64,000 nucleotides of DNA, from the NCBI GenBank assembly GCA_964188305.1, contig OZ076898.1; one strand, given 5' to 3'. Every line of letters starts with the position of its first letter. Within the stretch, counting starts at the first letter, position 1. Position numbers and translations under genes: made by a program. The notes beneath the pieces are model-generated. The model was not told the origin of the DNA, did no database searches, and saw nothing but the letters and a program-made list of their open reading frames with translations. This DNA comes from Podarcis bocagei (taxonomy: Eukaryota). Positions 14,604 to 43,730 of the stretch are shown piece by piece.

Positions 14604-15002
14604 ATGAGCCTGCCCCCGGGCACCCCCGCTGCTAGGATGCTCTTTGTTATGGCTCTGGCCTGTGCCAGCCCCTTCTTGGACCTGCGGCGGCGGACCATCA
14701 ACATCCCCATCATTTTCAGTGGCTCCACCTACACGCAAGAGAGTGCCCGGTTCTCGCCTGAGGACTTCCGCAACTTCTCAATGGAGATCAACCCCATCCC
14801 TGTGGTTCTGAATGATACCAACCCGCGCAGCCTCATTGTGCGGCTCTGTGATGTTCTCTCCTCCCTGCACATCCACGGTGTGGTTTTTGAGGATGATACA
14901 CGTACAGAGGCTGTGGCCCAGATCCTGGACTTCATCTCAGCACAGACCTCTGTTCCCATCATTGGCATCAACGGAGGATCAGCCATTGTTCTTACACCCA
15001 AG
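14604..15002 (+). CDS. GRIN2D: GluN2D coding exon 1 (signal peptide, start of ATD)
   Basis: Acceptor ccacttccag at 14580, ATG at 14604 (second in-frame ATG at 14637). MSLPPGTPAARMLFVMALACASP...GGSAIVLTPK, donor AAG|gtaaag, phase 0. Confidence 0.93.
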
Positions 15003-15608
15003 GTAAAGTGATTTATTCTGACTATGTTCACGCTCATATCCTGTGTTTTTCTCTGCCCAGATTATGTATAACTATTTTAAATTCTGCACTTCATAAAATT
15101 ATACAACCTGAATCTATTACAAACATTTACTCACTGATGCTAATCTGCTTAATTTGCATACAGATAGTGCAGAACTTGCCTTTATCTTAGTGCAGAATTT
15201 TGGATACTTTGATCAAGATTTTTTTTTCATTAAGTGCAAGGCAGGCACTTAATTGAGGGGCTTTGGTGTAGGGACACTGGGAGGGCTGAAGATAACAATA
15301 GATATGTCACACAAGCTCATACTATGACCCCTTTTTCAAGGTTAGATGGGCATCAGCAGTTCAGAGAGGAGGACAATTTCAGCATAATGATTTTCTGCAT
15401 GCAAGCACTTTTGGAATTATTTGTATGGTGTACAGAGGTGGAAAATGTTTTGCTGGAACTAAAACCCAACCTTTATTCCCCAACTAAAACTATTCTGAAA
15501 GCTCTCCCATGACAGGAGAGAGGTAGAAATCAGAGAGTAGACCTATAATGGGATGGCAAATAGGTAGCACTTATCACCTTTGTGTCTTTTGCTCCCTCCT
15601 AAATCCAG

Positions 15609-16201
15609 GAGAAAGGATCAACCTTTCTACAATTAGGTTCCTCGACCAAACAGCAATTGCAAGTGATGTTTGAGGTCCTGGAACAGTACGATTGGACGGC
15701 ATTTGCTGTCATCACGACACTGTTTCCCGGCTATGAAGACTTTGTAGATTACATTGAGGTCCTGACTGACAGCAGTTTCATTGGTTGGGAGCGCCGCAGC
15801 ACTGTGACCCTTAATCTCACTGATGACCCAGACGGGGCCCGCCTCAAACGCCAGCTCCGGGAAATAAATGCCCGCATCTGCCTTCTCTACTGCTCCCGTG
15901 AAGAAGCAGAAAGCATCTTCCGTGCAGCCCGTGAAGTGAAGCTCACAGGCCCCGGGTATATCTGGTTCATGGCAGGTGCCAACTTTGGTAGAACTGAGTA
16001 CATGCCGGAGGAACTTCCCGAGGGTCTCTTCATGGTGCTTTCAGCAGGATGGAAAGATGATCTCTACCACAGGGTTCAAAATGGTGTAGCCATCATTGCC
16101 AAGGGGGCAGAGGCCCTATTCCAAGTCTACGGCTCAGTTCCAAAATTCAACAATGATTGCCGGGCACCCAATCTCACCCAGATCAACGAGAACCTGCATC
16201 G
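15609..16201 (+). CDS. GRIN2D: GluN2D coding exon 2 (ATD)
   Basis: atccag|GAG AAA GGA; EKGSTFLQLGSS...NENLHR; donor CG|gtcagc, phase 2. Confidence 0.95.
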
Positions 16202-16959
16202 GTCAGCAGGGAAAGAGGCTGGGGGGATTTTGCCTGGAAGGGGGGTGGAATCAAGAGCAAAAGAAAGTGCTGTTGTCCACAAGGGATGTATAGCTTATCG
16301 CCATACCCTCCTCCCCTCCCATTCCTTTCTTCATTTGCAAATCTGTTCCTCAAAGCATGCTTCCTACATTCCTAACTTGTTCCTCTTCACATCCATTTCA
16401 GCCATTTTGACTTTCGCCTTGCTTCCTTATCTCCATTTCTCATGAGTCCTTATGCGCCACTGGGCGCAGGAGTGAAATGCCAGGCTGAGCATGAGGAGGA
16501 GAGAGAACAGGGGGTGACATGGCAGGGGGCTGAGACCGGGGTGGGCGGGATGACAAAGGCAGGAGGAGGCAGGTACTTCTCCCAGGATATGGCTGCTCCA
16601 GATGAGAAAGCCGGACTCCTACGTCCCTTCCTGGGAAAAGGAGCACAACGATTGAATCTGGGAAGAGTGTTAGCCAACCCACTAGTGGTAGAGAAACCTG
16701 AGTCAGACGGGGAGGGCATAGCCTGGTCACTGAAGACCCAGCAGCACTGCTGTCACTGGGGAAAGGGAAATCCTCCCCTATGCAGTGAGCATCTGCACAC
16801 CCAACAGTTCTGCAAGGACACCTCTTCCTTACTTTCAAGTAAGAGCCTCTGTCTTCATCTGAGCAGGAACCAGGGATTCATGAATCCCTATATATCCACT
16901 CACCCTATGCACCAACATCCAGCCAGTGCTGGATTTACACAAAAGCTATATATCTATTT

Positions 16960-17092: not shown

Positions 17093-17883
17093 TTAATCTA
17101 CAGTTAAGGTCGGGTTTAGGGCCTCGCATTGTGAGGGTCTCCAAATACAACCCCCCAATTTCAATGACTCTGCCTTTAAAAACCCCCATAAATGGTTTAA
17201 TTTTTATGTCCCATGCACAACACACACAACACATGTTGTTTGGCTCTTCCATTTAGAAAGGGCTAAACAGTGTGTGTGTGACCACTCTTGCTATGTCAGA
17301 AAGCAGAAGGTGTTTTCATTTAAATAAATTTCATATGCAAATAGGCTTCTTGCAAGATAGATGATTAGTTTTCAGTTGTAACCTTGCCTATGTACGGGTT
17401 ATATATGCAAATATAAAAGTTTATTACTTTTATTTTCATTGTCCTTTCTGTTAGAATAATACACAGTATTATGGGGCCTTTTAAACTTGACATAGCATAG
17501 GCTTCCAGCATGTCTTTAATCTGGCCTGCAGCCAGCTCTTTCAGTGGCTCTGCTTCCCACTAATTGCATACCATCCCTTCCTACCATCTCCCCATAATGC
17601 CAGTTACACCCCACACCTCATCCATATTTACCTACCTTCGCACACCATCCACCCTCACTCAATACCCTGCCTCCCCTTTCAAAATGGGCCTGATTCCAAA
17701 AGGGCTTTTCCCTTCTCGATTTTCAAGTCCTGATCCACAGCTGCATCTGAAATACTAGACAAGTGCCCTGTGGGTCAGGCTTGAGGGGGATGGCAAAATG
17801 AGGGGGAGTGAAGCTGCGATGGCAGCATATGGAAAGTGGGCTCTAGACTGACACTGAAGAGCTTCCATCATGCCTCTTCGCAG

Positions 17884-17998
17884 GTACTTCATGAATGTTA
17901 CCTGGGGTGAGAAGGATTTCTCCTTTAATGAGGATGGGTACCTCATCAATCCATCCTTGGCTGTGATCTCCCTCAGCAAAAACCGAACCTGGGAGGTG
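17884..17998 (+). CDS. GRIN2D: GluN2D coding exon 3 (ATD end)
   Basis: tcgcag|G TAC TTC; [38 protein letters not shown]; donor GTG|gtgagt; 115 nt. Confidence 0.96.
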
Positions 17999-19429
17999 GT
18001 GAGTTTGAGGGAGGTTTGGGGGGAAGGTGGTTGGGTTGGGGAGGAAGGTTGATGAGTCAAGGGGAGGGGGTGAAAAAAACGTTTGGACAGGTCGTAATCC
18101 GAAGTCCATGTGAGTTGGTGGAATTGTGGCAAGGTTGATGTTTGGGGAAGGTGAACTGTTATCATGGGGTAATTATGGGACAAGTGTGAATTCGGGAGAT
18201 GGCGTGTGTTTGGAGAACTGTCCAAGGGCTATAAACAGAAAGAGCTGAGAGGGTGCTGAGTCTTAAGCCCCTGCTATAAGGCACAGCCGTTCACATCCCA
18301 ACACCCTACAGAAAGTCTCTCACAGTCCTGATGGCACCATGAAACAGTCAGAGATCGCAAGTGCCCAACAAAAAAGCAGCCAGAGGAGCAAAGTAATGTA
18401 AATTTCTTACACAAGCATATCAAGCCAAACCCTACAGGGAAAGGCAACCAATCTGGCAGGGGTGGTGGATTCATTCCTGAATCTCATTTTGGCAATTGCT
18501 AAGCCCTTGGCTGTGAGCAAAGCCCATCCACCGAGTGCTCACACAAGGTATCTATTTGGCTAATTTTGTTTAATTAAAAGTATTTATAAGTTGCATATTT
18601 TACACATGTCCTCCCAAAGTAAGAACATCAAAAGAAACGATACAGAAACAATAGCTATGTGGGCACATGATGCTACTAAAGAAAGCTGCTCTGGTTAAGT
18701 CATCAAAGCCTTAGTTGAGGGTCGTAGTCAAGGAAAAGGTCTAGAGGGCTTCCTTAAAAGCCTGAACAAGGTGTAAGCCATTTGGAAAGTGAGTTCCACA
18801 GCTGTGGGCCACCACCAAAAAAGCCCTGTCTTGTGCTCGCCAGCTTCACTGATTTTCCCAGTGAAGCAACACCTCCCTAACCTATCAAAATATATCCTAG
18901 TTTTTAACTAATTTTAACTAGTTTGTTTTTATCACTCTGTATTTTATCACTGATGTTTTTTAAATTTTGTAAGCCACCTTGTATTCCAACTTGGGAGAAA
19001 GATGGGATATAAATATCAAATAAACAAAATATAGGCAAGATCATCTGAGATATGGTATTGGCTACCCAATATCCTGACTCCATGCTGGTCATGGATGTCC
19101 TCAATGGATGTAGGAAGCAGAGGAATAATGTGAATGGAGGATGTGATTTTTAAGACAAGAGTTTGTATTTCTTTCATGTTGTAAGCCACCTTAGCATGGT
19201 TTGAAGTGGCATACAAATTAAATTATGTATGTATGTTTGCATGTACAGTATGTCTGATGTGAAGACTCAGAAGTTGGTGCAATCCTGGAGATGTTAGTTG
19301 TGGGAGGGGGCTTTCAAAACTGAGTTTCTTGAATATGGCATAAATTTGGGACCAACACTGGTGGGCTGGCAAGAGTCTGGAGAAAGGTTTGGGGTGTATC
19401 TAACCTCTTCTCTATGCCCCGGGAGGCAG

Positions 19430-19626
19430 GTGGGAAGGTGGGAGCGCAGAATCCTGAGCATGTCACGCTACAGAAAATTCCTGCAACCTGTGGATGACAA
19501 CAAGCACCTCATGGTGGCAACACTGGAGGAAAGGCCCTTCGTTATTGTCGACAACATTGATCCAGCCACAAAGACCTGCATTCGTGATTCAGTTCCCTGC
19601 CGCCACCCACTCAACCATACCAACAG
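19430..19626 (+). CDS. GRIN2D: GluN2D coding exon 4 (ATD-LBD linker, start of S1)
   Basis: ggcag|GTG GGA AGG TGG; [40 protein letters not shown]...LNHTN; donor AG|gtattc, phase 2. Confidence 0.94.
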
Positions 19627-19789
19627 GTATTCCTGAGATGCTGGCCAAGTTTACCACAGCTGAGTTCAGTGTTATCAATTTTACATTTAGATCTTTCTCT
19701 TCTTCAGGAAAGTTCAGAGTGGCTTGTGTAGGCCTCCCAGTGGACACCCATCCAAGCACCAATCAATCCCATGCTTGCTTATTTATTAC

Positions 19790-19846
19790 TTAACCCATTA
19801 ATATTGCCCCATTCCTCCAAGGATCTCAAAGTGGCACACATAGTTT

Positions 19847-19906
<60 letters not shown>

Positions 19907-20030
19907 AGCTTTGCTATGAGGGTAGGTTAGTGAATGGCCTAAAATCAGCAAGTGAGTTTCATGGCTGACAGGGGATTTGAACCTGGGCCGCTACAGACCT
20001 AGTCCACTATAACCACTACGTCATGCTGGC
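19790..20030 (-). mobile_element. Squam3-like SINE containing a (TTTC)n microsatellite (about 19847-19905)
   Basis: cctccaaggatctcaaagtggc...gagtttcatggctgacaggggatttgaacctggg...tagtccactataaccactac. Confidence 0.7.
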
Positions 20031-20104
20031 TCTGTGTTTACCTTCCACAGTGCTCCTAAACCACTTGCTGAGTTCCTTTCCCTCCCTCCTTGTGCTGTTC
20101 ACAG

Positions 20105-20258
20105 CCATCAAATGGTAAAGAGCTGCTGCAAAGGATTTTGCATCGACATCCTGAAGCGTCTGGCTAAGACTCTGGGTTTCACCTACGATCTCTATCTTGT
20201 CACCAATGGCAAGCATGGCAAGATAGTCAACGGCATGTGGAACGGCATGATTGGAGAG
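20105..20258 (+). CDS. GRIN2D: GluN2D coding exon 5 (S1); alternative in-frame start possible at 20051
   Basis: ttcacag|C CAT CAA; [20 protein letters not shown]...GKHGK...WNGMIGE; donor GAG|gtaact. Confidence 0.9.
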
Positions 20259-20707
20259 GTAACTTCATCCCCTCCCCAAGGAACTGGGTGGTCTGGGCTC
20301 ACGCACAACTTCTTAGGACTCTCTGCATTTTGTTCCTCTTAAAAGAACCCAGGAATTCTGGTTTCCCACCCACACATGTGTGACTCTCAACTCCACTTGA
20401 GAGGACCCACACGTCCTGCTGCAGGCTGTTTGGATTGTATCCTTGAAGTAAAGGACTATTGAATAGTGCACCGACATAAATAGTAGGGTTAATCTGCTTC
20501 AAAGGTTATGGGAGGGTTGCCCTAGGCAATATAGCTCTGCCCATTCCTGGATCTGATAGGCAAACAGAATTTTACATCCTGTCTCCAGGGCTCAGGGTGG
20601 GTACCACTGTTTACTCAGAAATACTGGACCCTCCCCTTCCTTTCCAGAAAACCCAGGATTGCTGGCTATTTGTACTTTATCCATCTCTCTCTGTGTGTGT
20701 CTCTCAG

Positions 20708-20861
20708 GTGTATTACAAGCGAGCTGACATGGCGATTGGATCCCTGACCATCAATGCGGAGAGAGCTGAAGTCATAGATTTTTCTGTGCCCTTTGTCGAG
20801 ACAGGAATCAGTGTGATGGTGTCTCGTAGCAATGGAACTGTTTCACCTTCTGCCTTCCTAG
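20708..20861 (+). CDS. GRIN2D: GluN2D coding exon 6 (S1 ligand-binding segment)
   Basis: ctctcag|GTG; [51 protein letters not shown]; donor G|gtgaat; 154 nt. Confidence 0.96.
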
Positions 20862-21751
20862 GTGAATACCCAGCCCTGGGATGGGTCAAAGTAAAAAGCA
20901 GGAGGGAGCGTTGGCATGAGATGTGGAAGGAGTCTTCCAGGTAGTCTGGTTTCAAAGCAGGGTTCATTATAGTAGAGAAGTGAGAAGTCCTAATCTTCCC
21001 CCATCCTGTCATCTATTGGATCTAAGTAGTTGTGTACCCAATCTTGGGGAAACAGCCCCACTAAGGACCTGCTTTATTGCTGAGGTAGAGTTTTGAATTT
21101 TTTAGTGTCAATTTTATTTTAGCATTTTTAACCCACCATTTATGCTGGAAAGGTGGGGTATAGATAAAATAGAAAAATGTTTAAAACAATTGTTAAAATG
21201 GACATACAAAATGATGACCTTTGGCTGAAGGAAAATGGCCTGAGAAAAGCCATAAGCAGAGAAAGAGAGAGAAAGAAAAGAAAACTTGCCCATTTGTGGG
21301 TATCAAGTGGGCAGCTGCCAATATGTATCAATGGGAGTTACATAACTGCAGTTAACACAGTACTTAGAATCACAATGGAAGTACCAGCAGACAGGTTTTT
21401 CCAAATCCTGGGAAAAGACAATTTCACCCAAATTGACTCACATTAACAAATGTGCAGTTTTCAAGGAAGACATTTTGATCTTTCAGATCAAAATAATAGC
21501 TTTATTTTTTTGCCATGGAGGGACTTGTGTAGCACCCTCCCAAAGCCACTATTCCCTCAAGGATGGTGATAATGGTAGATCCATTTTTTTTTCCTGCTTT
21601 GGGGTTCATCTGCATCATACTCTTAAATCAATTCTGACAGACTATCTCAGAGTCTCCACATGACCACAACTCACACAGCTCCTCAGGAAAAGCCAATTTA
21701 AAGAGGCGGCCTTAAATTACACCATTTTTAAAAGTGTTACTCGTGATTTAG

Positions 21752-22690
<939 letters not shown>

Positions 22691-42287: not shown

Positions 42288-43730
42288 GGCATGTACAGCT
42301 GTTGCAGCAGTGAAGACCCCAAAGTCCCAGATCAGCAGCAGCTACCCATCCTTAACCACACCTACGGGCCGTCGCGAGGTGCAGCCCCAGCGTTGCCCAG
42401 CCCCCCTGGCCCTCCACTTCCCTGTTCTAGCTTCCTGCCTCGTGAACGGCGCATTGTGGAACGGTGGCGCCACGCTCGTAGTCCCAATTGCTACAAGGAT
42501 CTATACCCTCCGACGCCTACAGAGCTCCCCACAACCAAACCCCCACGCCATAGCCTCAAGAGCCCTTTCTCAGATGGCTTCCACCGGTTCTATGGGCCCA
42601 TTGAACCAGAAGGGCTGTCCGATCACGTCAGTGGCAAAAAGATGGCGCCCTGTCAGCTGTCTCCGCCACCACCCTCCCGGGGGCTGGAAAATCCTCCCTC
42701 ATATTTTGCCATCGTGCGTGAGAAAGAAACTCCCGACATGCCACCGGTGGCATCGGGCTGGCAACGCAAATCCCTTCGTGGGTTGTATGAAAGTTTCCAA
42801 GCCGGGAAAGCGGCAAGCCGAGCCCCAGAAGTGAAGAAATATGATGGCTCCTCCAGTGGCTATGCGACCAAAAGCCCTTGTGAGTTGGAACGGGGCAGCA
42901 GTCGGCCTTTTGGGAAAGAACGGGGTCGGTATGGCTACACACGGCTGTCCTATGAGGATGAACGCTCCCCACCTGTTTCCCGCTACAGACATGCCGAAGA
43001 GACATCTCTGCCTCGAGCCGAGACAGAAGTCAAATGCCCGACATCATCCAGCCGAGAGAGGAGCTCCCGGGCTCACATTTGCCGCAGTCATTCCCACCCG
43101 CTTGCCGTAGGTGCCAGCTTGCGCAGCCAAAGTCATTATGTGGATTTTTCTGACTCTGATTCTGACATCTGTGAGAGGGACAGTGATGGGCATAGCTGCT
43201 GGTACCAGTCGCCGGATTATTTCTGCACATACCCGTCCCGAGAGAGGCAGCTCTTTGCCACGCATAAGCCCCTGCACTACTGGTCAGCCGACAAGTTGGC
43301 CAAGTGCCACGGATGCCACGGTCCCTGCCAGCACTGCCTGAGCTTGGAAATGCTCCCGCCACCCACCCCACCATGCCGCAAGGAGGCTTTGCGCTACTTG
43401 AGCTGTTCTGAGGAGCGTCTGGAACGCCGGCTGGACTGGGAGCACCGCCACTGTAGCCTGTATGGATGCCTGGCTCCTCGCCACCGCCACGGCTTTCACC
43501 GACGCTGCCATCACCATTCCTGCGAGCTGGGGCCAGCTGGCGGAGTTCTACATCCCACCTCCCGTAGCCTGGAGGACCTCAGCTCTTGCCACATGGTGCG
43601 CTGCGGGGCCTCCCATCGACACCAGGGCGGCTTCTCGCCGGAGTGGCTGCCACGCCGGGTGAGCAGAAGCGGGGAGCTTTTTGCCCGCCGTGGTTCTGCC
43701 CATTTCTCTAGCCTGGAGTCAGAGGTATGA
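42288..43730 (+). CDS. GRIN2D: GluN2D coding exon 12 (cytoplasmic C-terminal domain, 480 aa)
   Basis: ctccag|GGC ATG TAC; GMYSCCS...PPSY motif...SRSLEDLSSC...RRGSAHFSSLESEV, then TGA. Confidence 0.96.
   Translation, partial: GMYSCCSSEDPKVPDQQQLPILNHTYGPSRGAAPALPSPPGPPLPCSSFLPRERRIVERWRHARSPNCYKDLYPPTPTELPTTKPPRHSLKSPFSDGFHRFYGPIEPEGLSDHVSGKKMAPCQLSPPPPSRGLENPPSYFAIVREKETPDMPPVASGWQRKSLRGLYESFQAGKAASRAPEVKKYDGSSSGYATKSPCELERGSSRPFGKERGRYGYTRLSYEDERSPPVSRYRHAEETSLPRAETEVKCPTSSSRERSSRAHICRSHSHPLAVGASLRSQSHYVDFSDSDSDICERDSDGHSCWYQSPDYFCTYPSRERQLFATHKPLHYWSADKLAKCHGCHGPCQHCLSLEMLPPPTPPCRKEALRYLSCSEERLERRLDWEHRHCSLYGCLAPRHRHGFHRRCHHHSCELGPAGGVLHPTSRSLEDLSSCHMVRCGASHRHQGGFSPEWLPRRVSRSGELFARRGSAHFSSLESEV

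Follow-up and report, generated by a model that had tools for sequence, protein, structure and literature searches.

The stretch of DNA analyzed here (the window) comprises 64,000 nucleotides of contig OZ076898.1 from the wall lizard Podarcis bocagei. It contains the coding region of GRIN2D, encoding the NMDA receptor subunit GluN2D, on the plus strand. The 12 coding exons extend from the start ATG at 14604 to a stop codon ending at 43730. The window was searched by tblastn, with tuatara GluN2D as the first query and GluN2D of Podarcis lilfordi (P0200) as the second. The latter gave 12 collinear matches on the plus strand between 14604 and 43727, which were gap-free over residues 1–1330. Identity to the P. 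lilfordi protein was 96–100% per exon, except for one match (20699–20887; 86%), the query range of which overlapped that of the next match. Exact splice sites were examined for exons 4 and 5 of the 12 coding exons; the tblastn mismatches in these two exons were located where the matches overran the splice sites, and neither contained a gap.

The exons under discussion all lie on the plus strand. The second coding exon (15606–16202) encodes part of the ATD and matched the Pfam family ANF_receptor (6.6e-12), while the third (17876–18001), placed by tblastn, covers ATD residues about 329–369 of the P. lilfordi protein. The fourth (19430–19626; 197 nt) encodes the protein from the final part of the ATD through the ATD-LBD linker to the first part of LBD segment S1, and bears a 15-nt deletion. 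The fifth (20105–20258) encodes a further part of S1. A conserved exon was also located at 21854–21982, and the stretch at 22140–22376 matched Lig_chan (9.5e-22). The P. lilfordi protein contains PF01094, PF10613, PF00497, and PF00060. The window exons and this protein together present the architecture expected of an ionotropic glutamate receptor, namely, an ANF_receptor ATD, a Lig_chan-Glu_bd/SBP LBD, and a Lig_chan pore. Because the exons are collinear and gap-free, nearly identical to P. lilfordi GluN2D, and encode the expected Pfam domains, the window holds an intact wall-lizard GRIN2D gene. Open reading frames of at least 130 aa outside GRIN2D in the window had no Pfam match, and a scan of the window revealed no Rfam match. 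A TTTC/GAAA-type simple repeat was noted in the intron just 3' of exon 4 (19771–19951), where it gives rise to spurious repeat open reading frames (FLSFFLSF and KERKKERK).

The assignment to GluN2D was examined in two ways. When the 65-residue peptide of exon 4 was compared with all PDB chains by phmmer, human GluN2D (7yff, 8e96, and 9d37) ranked at the top. The E-values by paralogue were 7e-21 for GluN2D, 1e-16 for GluN2C, 3e-14 for GluN2A, and 1e-9 for GluN2B. In a maximum likelihood tree of 38 GluN2C and GluN2D cores, the split between the two paralogues and the squamate GluN2D clade both had support of 100, and squamate GluN2D was sister to Sphenodon GluN2D with support of 91.

Exon 4 is bounded by an AG acceptor (19428–19429) and a GT donor (19627–19628). 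Its reading frame passes from RRILSM directly to SRYRKF, such that the Met codon (19460–19462) and the Ser codon (19463–19465) meet at junction 19462/19463; DNA and protein alignments identify this ATG/TCA junction (19460–19465) as Met380/Ser381 of Podarcis GluN2D. In other vertebrates, these codons are separated by AAG TAC CCN GTN TGG, which encodes K-Y-P-V/L-W. The exon peptide aligned to human GluN2D by phmmer with a single five-residue gap opposite KYPLW. The exon DNA of the window was aligned with that of three further squamates, the leopard gecko genome, and a sauropsid contig with the long form, which reads ATG AAG TAC CCG GTT TGG TCG. We found one codon-aligned 15-nt gap immediately 3' of the ATG, with conserved flanks and splice sites. 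We also sought microhomology at the ends of the deletion in this alignment; 1 nt was shared, and there was no slippage signature. The first-pass annotation had described an in-frame five-residue deletion at this junction within a 197-nt exon of an intact receptor gene, and the sequence, splice sites, PDB alignment, and 12 collinear exons all agree with that description. It had also given the spacing in the paralogues, which we recovered as RHAVWPRY in a GluN2A-type, KYYVWPRM in a GluN2B-type, and KYPVWPRY in a GluN2C-type sequence (P0063, P0095, and P0058, respectively).

The leopard gecko, Eublepharis macularius, reads RILTM-RYSKF-QPVDE in this exon (L005:4379–4567). Its gap is 18 nt because an additional Ser codon is gone, and a further 3-nt gap downstream removes a Leu. 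The gecko junction is therefore seven residues shorter than that of the tuatara, two beyond the loss common to squamates.

The position of the lost residues within the protein may be judged from the limits of solved constructs. Crystal constructs of the isolated GluN2B ATD (3jpw, 3qel, 5ewj, and 5tpz) terminate at KYYVWPR(M), and the residues lost in the lizard align with the final residues of these constructs, right before the ATD-LBD linker. GluN2D chains consisting of the LBD only (3oek_A and 4jwy_A) start at residue 22 of the exon peptide, 10 residues past the gap, and another sequence (P0070) concurs. Up to the start of these LBD constructs, the window retains 11 linker residues (19463–19495), and the linker proper is full-length in most squamates. 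Since the ATD constructs include the motif and the LBD constructs start 10 residues later, the loss of KYPVW is best assigned to the end of the ATD rather than to the linker proper. The earlier placement of the deletion at the ATD-LBD linker is corrected accordingly. AlphaFold models, each built on a 36-row alignment, had a mean pLDDT of 39.7 for residues 25–852 of Podarcis GluN2D and 38.7 for residues 28–868 of tuatara GluN2D, with values below 50 in the region of interest in both.

The distribution of the short form was established from named sequences, which were collected by searches with the full-length tuatara and Podarcis proteins and from the members of the Podarcis 90% cluster. Each of the 16 named GluN2D proteins from squamates that covers the region has the short form. 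They come from the lizards Podarcis, Lacerta, Eublepharis (Gekkota), Hemicordylus (Scincoidea), Sceloporus, Anolis carolinensis, A. sagrei, Phrynocephalus, and Varanus (two entries), and from six snakes (Crotalus tigris, Python, Notechis, Liasis, Pantherophis, and Protobothrops). Three independent genomic fragments (P0001, P0002, and P0113 on Logan contigs L001–L003) also have the short form; these were obtained by a representative search and a word search, which recovered many long-form fragments as well. The deletion is squamate-wide rather than particular to this lizard.

An error of assembly or annotation, or an allele private to one individual, would have to explain why the same gap recurs in independent assemblies of 15 named squamate species and in the three Logan contigs. 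Furthermore, the gap is internal to the exon and, thus, does not depend on the choice of a splice model. A search of public reads showed that 20 runs from nine studies and six organisms contain the stretch at 18900–20400 wholly or in part. We consider such an artefact to be extremely improbable. Six of the runs are small and were guessed to be RNA; they contain 20–37% of the words of this stretch, of which exons make up approximately 23%. These presumed RNA runs provide a weak hint of expression.

The long form, M/L-K/R-Y-P-V/L-W-S-R-Y, was found in GluN2D of Sphenodon, turtles, Alligator, and birds, and likewise in Xenopus, Ambystoma, Rhinatrema, Latimeria, the echidna, marsupials, placentals, and ray-finned fish, including the bichir and teleosts. 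Squamate GluN2C retains KYPVWPRY. A pattern of the form xxxxW[S/P/T][R/H] was present in 243 of the 269 GluN2A–D sequences with enough upstream sequence, and 20 of the 26 sequences lacking it were squamate GluN2D. The other exceptions were a pair of fish sequences in which Trp is replaced by Phe, two doubtful bird models, two fragments that are apparently mis-spliced, and one sequence missed by the pattern. The removed Trp is, thus, conserved across GluN2 subunits, as had been claimed. The hydrophobic motif K/R-Y/H-x-V/L-W, which closes the ATD in nearly all other vertebrate GluN2 subunits sampled, is absent from the window and from all squamate GluN2D examined; we treat it as a conserved feature of vertebrate GluN2, not as a formal criterion of the family.

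The first-pass annotation had also raised the possibility that non-mammalian GluN2D is short in general, in which case the residues would have been gained in mammals. This is refuted by the long form in the tuatara, turtles, the alligator, birds, three amphibians, the coelacanth, and fish, and in GluN2A, GluN2B, and GluN2C, and we give it practically no credence. The comparison of exon 4 over squamates, the tuatara, turtles, crocodilians, and amphibians, which had been proposed as a means of dating the deletion, places it on the squamate stem. Because the tuatara has the long form and all sampled squamates the short form, the deletion is dated after the split from the tuatara and before the split between geckos and other squamates. 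The loss of KYPVW is, to judge from the squamates sampled (a gecko, a cordylid, lacertids, iguanians, a monitor, and snakes), a shared derived trait of squamates that arose once on their stem. A paper linking GRIN2D with squamates was not found in the literature searched.

Among four squamates, pairwise dN/dS in exon 4 was 0.06–0.16, with dS of 0.5–0.9, and GluN2D sequences from geckos to snakes all fall inside one 90%-identity cluster. These values indicate that the short form has been under strong purifying selection since the stem, as a maintained and working state rather than a stage of decay. If squamate GluN2D were instead degenerating, or had no role as a receptor, relaxed constraint would account for its long stem branch and for the alteration of conserved residues, including those beside the Arg that binds glutamate. 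However, all 12 coding exons of the window are open, the transmembrane segments are nearly unchanged (one fixed replacement in M1–M3 and none in M4), and crown branches are shorter in GluN2D than in GluN2C. These observations and the low dN/dS make relaxed constraint very unlikely.

The deletion in exon 4 is not an isolated change. When 10 squamate GluN2D sequences and 10 from other vertebrates were aligned over their full length, exactly two squamate-specific internal deletions were found in the ordered core, and they lie in adjacent exons: the loss of KYPVW and the loss of five residues from loop 1 of the LBD, in exon 5. The tuatara sequence of this segment is SHPTNPLVFEKKCCKG (in a longer view, DSHPTNPLVFEKKCCKG), and squamates are five residues shorter there. 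Expressed as the spacing from TLEE to CCKG, the segment has 42 residues in squamate GluN2D; 47 in GluN2D of the tuatara, turtle, bird, Xenopus, coelacanth, and mammal; and 50 in that of Ambystoma. The gap lies two to three residues past the acceptor of exon 5, and the shortening may derive from a displaced acceptor instead of a deletion. Since the length of LBD loop 1 differs between GluN2 paralogues, its shortening may also be neutral. Outside the ordered core, squamate GluN2D lacks three residues near the mature N-terminus and has several insertions or deletions in the C-terminal domain.

Both deletions are accompanied by amino acid replacements. A column was regarded as conserved when it was the same in eight non-squamates from tuatara to coelacanth, and was scored when squamates were fixed for another residue. 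By this measure, squamate-fixed replacements occupy 38 of 720 columns in GluN2D vs 3 of 701 in GluN2C over comparable taxa (Fisher p = 7.6e-9). The 38 GluN2D replacements are distributed as 20 in the ATD, 1 in the linker, 9 in S1, 7 in S2, and, as given above, 1 in the transmembrane segments. The tuatara has no such excess, with 12 private changes in GluN2D vs 17 in GluN2C. The squamate stem measured 0.122 substitutions per site in GluN2D vs 0.024 in GluN2C on the free maximum likelihood tree, and 0.118 vs 0.024 on the fixed species topology. On the latter, the root-to-tip depth of the crown was 0.041 in GluN2D vs 0.058 in GluN2C.

Some of these replacements lie near the agonist. The segment SLTINEERSE (residues about 503–508) is altered in squamate GluN2D, which retains the Ser, Thr, and Arg. 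From the established literature on GluN2A, we take the Arg of S-L-T-I-N-x-E-R to be the residue that binds glutamate; the Glu two residues before it and the Ser directly after it are both replaced by Ala. NYPDMH (about 683–687) has become NYGEMH. The three changes on the squamate stem of GluN2C (477 R>D, 507 E>Q, and 686 P>H) are located on or beside columns that also changed in GluN2D, which hints at co-evolution of both subunits with a common partner, such as GluN1. We also noted a squamate-fixed replacement of Arg by Cys at residue 224 of Podarcis GluN2D, an ATD position that is encoded in exon 2 and conserved from coelacanth to mammals; there is no obvious partner cysteine.

The loss of KYPVW was one event in a burst of change in the extracellular part of GluN2D on the squamate stem. 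However, the mammalian GluN2D stem is also long (0.30 substitutions per site; the free tree misplaces this clade beside a bird), and the motif was nonetheless kept. Therefore, such a burst is not by itself proof of adaptive change. GluN2D therefore seems liable to bursts of this kind in individual lineages.

Each GluN2 subunit owes its particular open probability and decay time to the ATD and to the way in which the ATD is joined to the LBD, and GluN2D represents the slow, low open probability extreme among these subunits. It is established (PMC6080888, citing Gielen 2009 and Yuan 2009) that swaps of the ATD, or of the ATD and linker, between GluN2A and GluN2D make open probability, deactivation, and agonist potency more like those of the donor. 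Zhang et al. (bioRxiv 10.1101/2022.11.09.514853) found that swaps of the NTD and NTD-LBD linker alter the response of N2D to an LBD cross-link, and that the N2C linkers take up distinct conformations that are linked to the NTD-LBD angle. NTD-LBD linkers are also suspected of selecting the allosteric route (PMC8342458). The ATD-LBD linker was not addressed in a paper on conservation in zebrafish (PMC12613759) or in an smFRET paper (PMC11471786).

We infer that in squamate GluN2D the chain exits the lower lobe of the ATD five residues sooner, which would shorten the tether between the ATD and LBD. A shorter tether, in combination with the reduced loop 1 and the numerous ATD and LBD substitutions, is expected to cause the ATD-LBD junction to be repacked. 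The product would be a working GluN2D in which allosteric coupling differs in degree from that of the tuatara, turtle, and mammal type. Mammalian chimeras show that this region sets open probability, deactivation, and agonist potency; therefore, a quantitative change in coupling, in either direction, is plausible as the most likely consequence.

Alternatively, the deletion may be genuine and functionally neutral. A surface segment at a domain boundary would then have been lost by drift on the stem, with residues of the linker taking its place and gating remaining as in other GluN2D. The squamate receptor has stayed functional and constrained, which is consistent with a neutral loss, and the removal of two more residues at this site in the gecko has done no apparent damage, which suggests that changes in length are tolerated there; the variable length of loop 1 among paralogues points in the same direction. 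However, the motif has been preserved in GluN2A–D from fish to mammals, the Trp is missing almost solely in squamate GluN2D, and the loss coincides with a GluN2D-specific burst in which 37 of the 38 replacements are extracellular. Moreover, the region is one known to set subunit-specific gating (PMC6080888). We regard a neutral loss as a serious, if somewhat doubtful, alternative.

A stronger reading than altered coupling is that selection on the squamate stem rebuilt the extracellular allosteric unit of GluN2D in its entirety, through the loss of KYPVW, the shortening of loop 1, the 38 substitutions (some beside the Arg that binds glutamate), and matching changes in GluN2C at 477, 507, and 686. 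We offer this only tentatively. If it is true, lizards and snakes would have a GluN2D with clearly different open probability, deactivation, or sensitivity to agonist or protons, possibly co-evolved with GluN1, and squamates would have been running, for 200 million years, a natural experiment on how NMDA receptor gating depends on the ATD-LBD junction.

Collectively, we favor the reading that the window contains an intact Podarcis GRIN2D gene, that KYPVW was lost once on the squamate stem within a burst of change, that the short form has been constrained since, and that ATD-LBD coupling was probably altered. We assign a probability of approximately 0.8 to this reading as a whole. It means that a whole order of reptiles lacks the motif closing the GluN2D ATD and that the short form has been constrained for roughly 200 million years. 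Squamate GluN2D and that of the tuatara or turtles, together with the gecko form that is two residues shorter again, may serve as matched natural constructs for studying the function of the junction. The present results also flag squamate GluN2D as a neural receptor that changed unusually fast on one branch, and the pharmacology of mammalian GluN2D may not carry over to lizards and snakes.

One close comparison is with the tuatara, the GluN2D of which (UniProt A0A8D0GMG8; P0004) is the orthologue of the sister lineage and is 85–87% identical to squamate GluN2D over the core. In contrast to the squamate protein, it keeps KYPVW and the full loop 1, and has no GluN2D-specific excess of private changes. 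Human and rat GluN2D (7yff, 8e96, and 9d37; LBD, 3oek) resemble the lizard protein in exon content and in the order of domains, with an ANF_receptor ATD, an LBD of S1 and S2, and a Lig_chan pore. In the lizard protein, however, KYPLW at the ATD end and five residues of loop 1 are missing, and squamate-fixed substitutions occupy positions that are otherwise conserved between the coelacanth and mammals.

A natural change in length at the ATD-LBD interface that affects deactivation and proton sensitivity is found in the exon-5 (N1) cassette of GluN1. This insert is alternatively spliced and may be present or absent within one animal, whereas the loss in squamate GluN2D is a fixed genomic deletion. 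Engineered chimeras and deletions of the GluN2 ATD, with or without the linker, alter the same module and show that it controls open probability, deactivation, and agonist potency (Gielen 2009 and Yuan 2009, as cited in PMC6080888; bioRxiv 10.1101/2022.11.09.514853). However, these chimeras are whole-domain swaps between paralogues made in the laboratory, whereas squamate GluN2D carries a natural deletion of five residues at the end of the ATD that became fixed in a reptile order.
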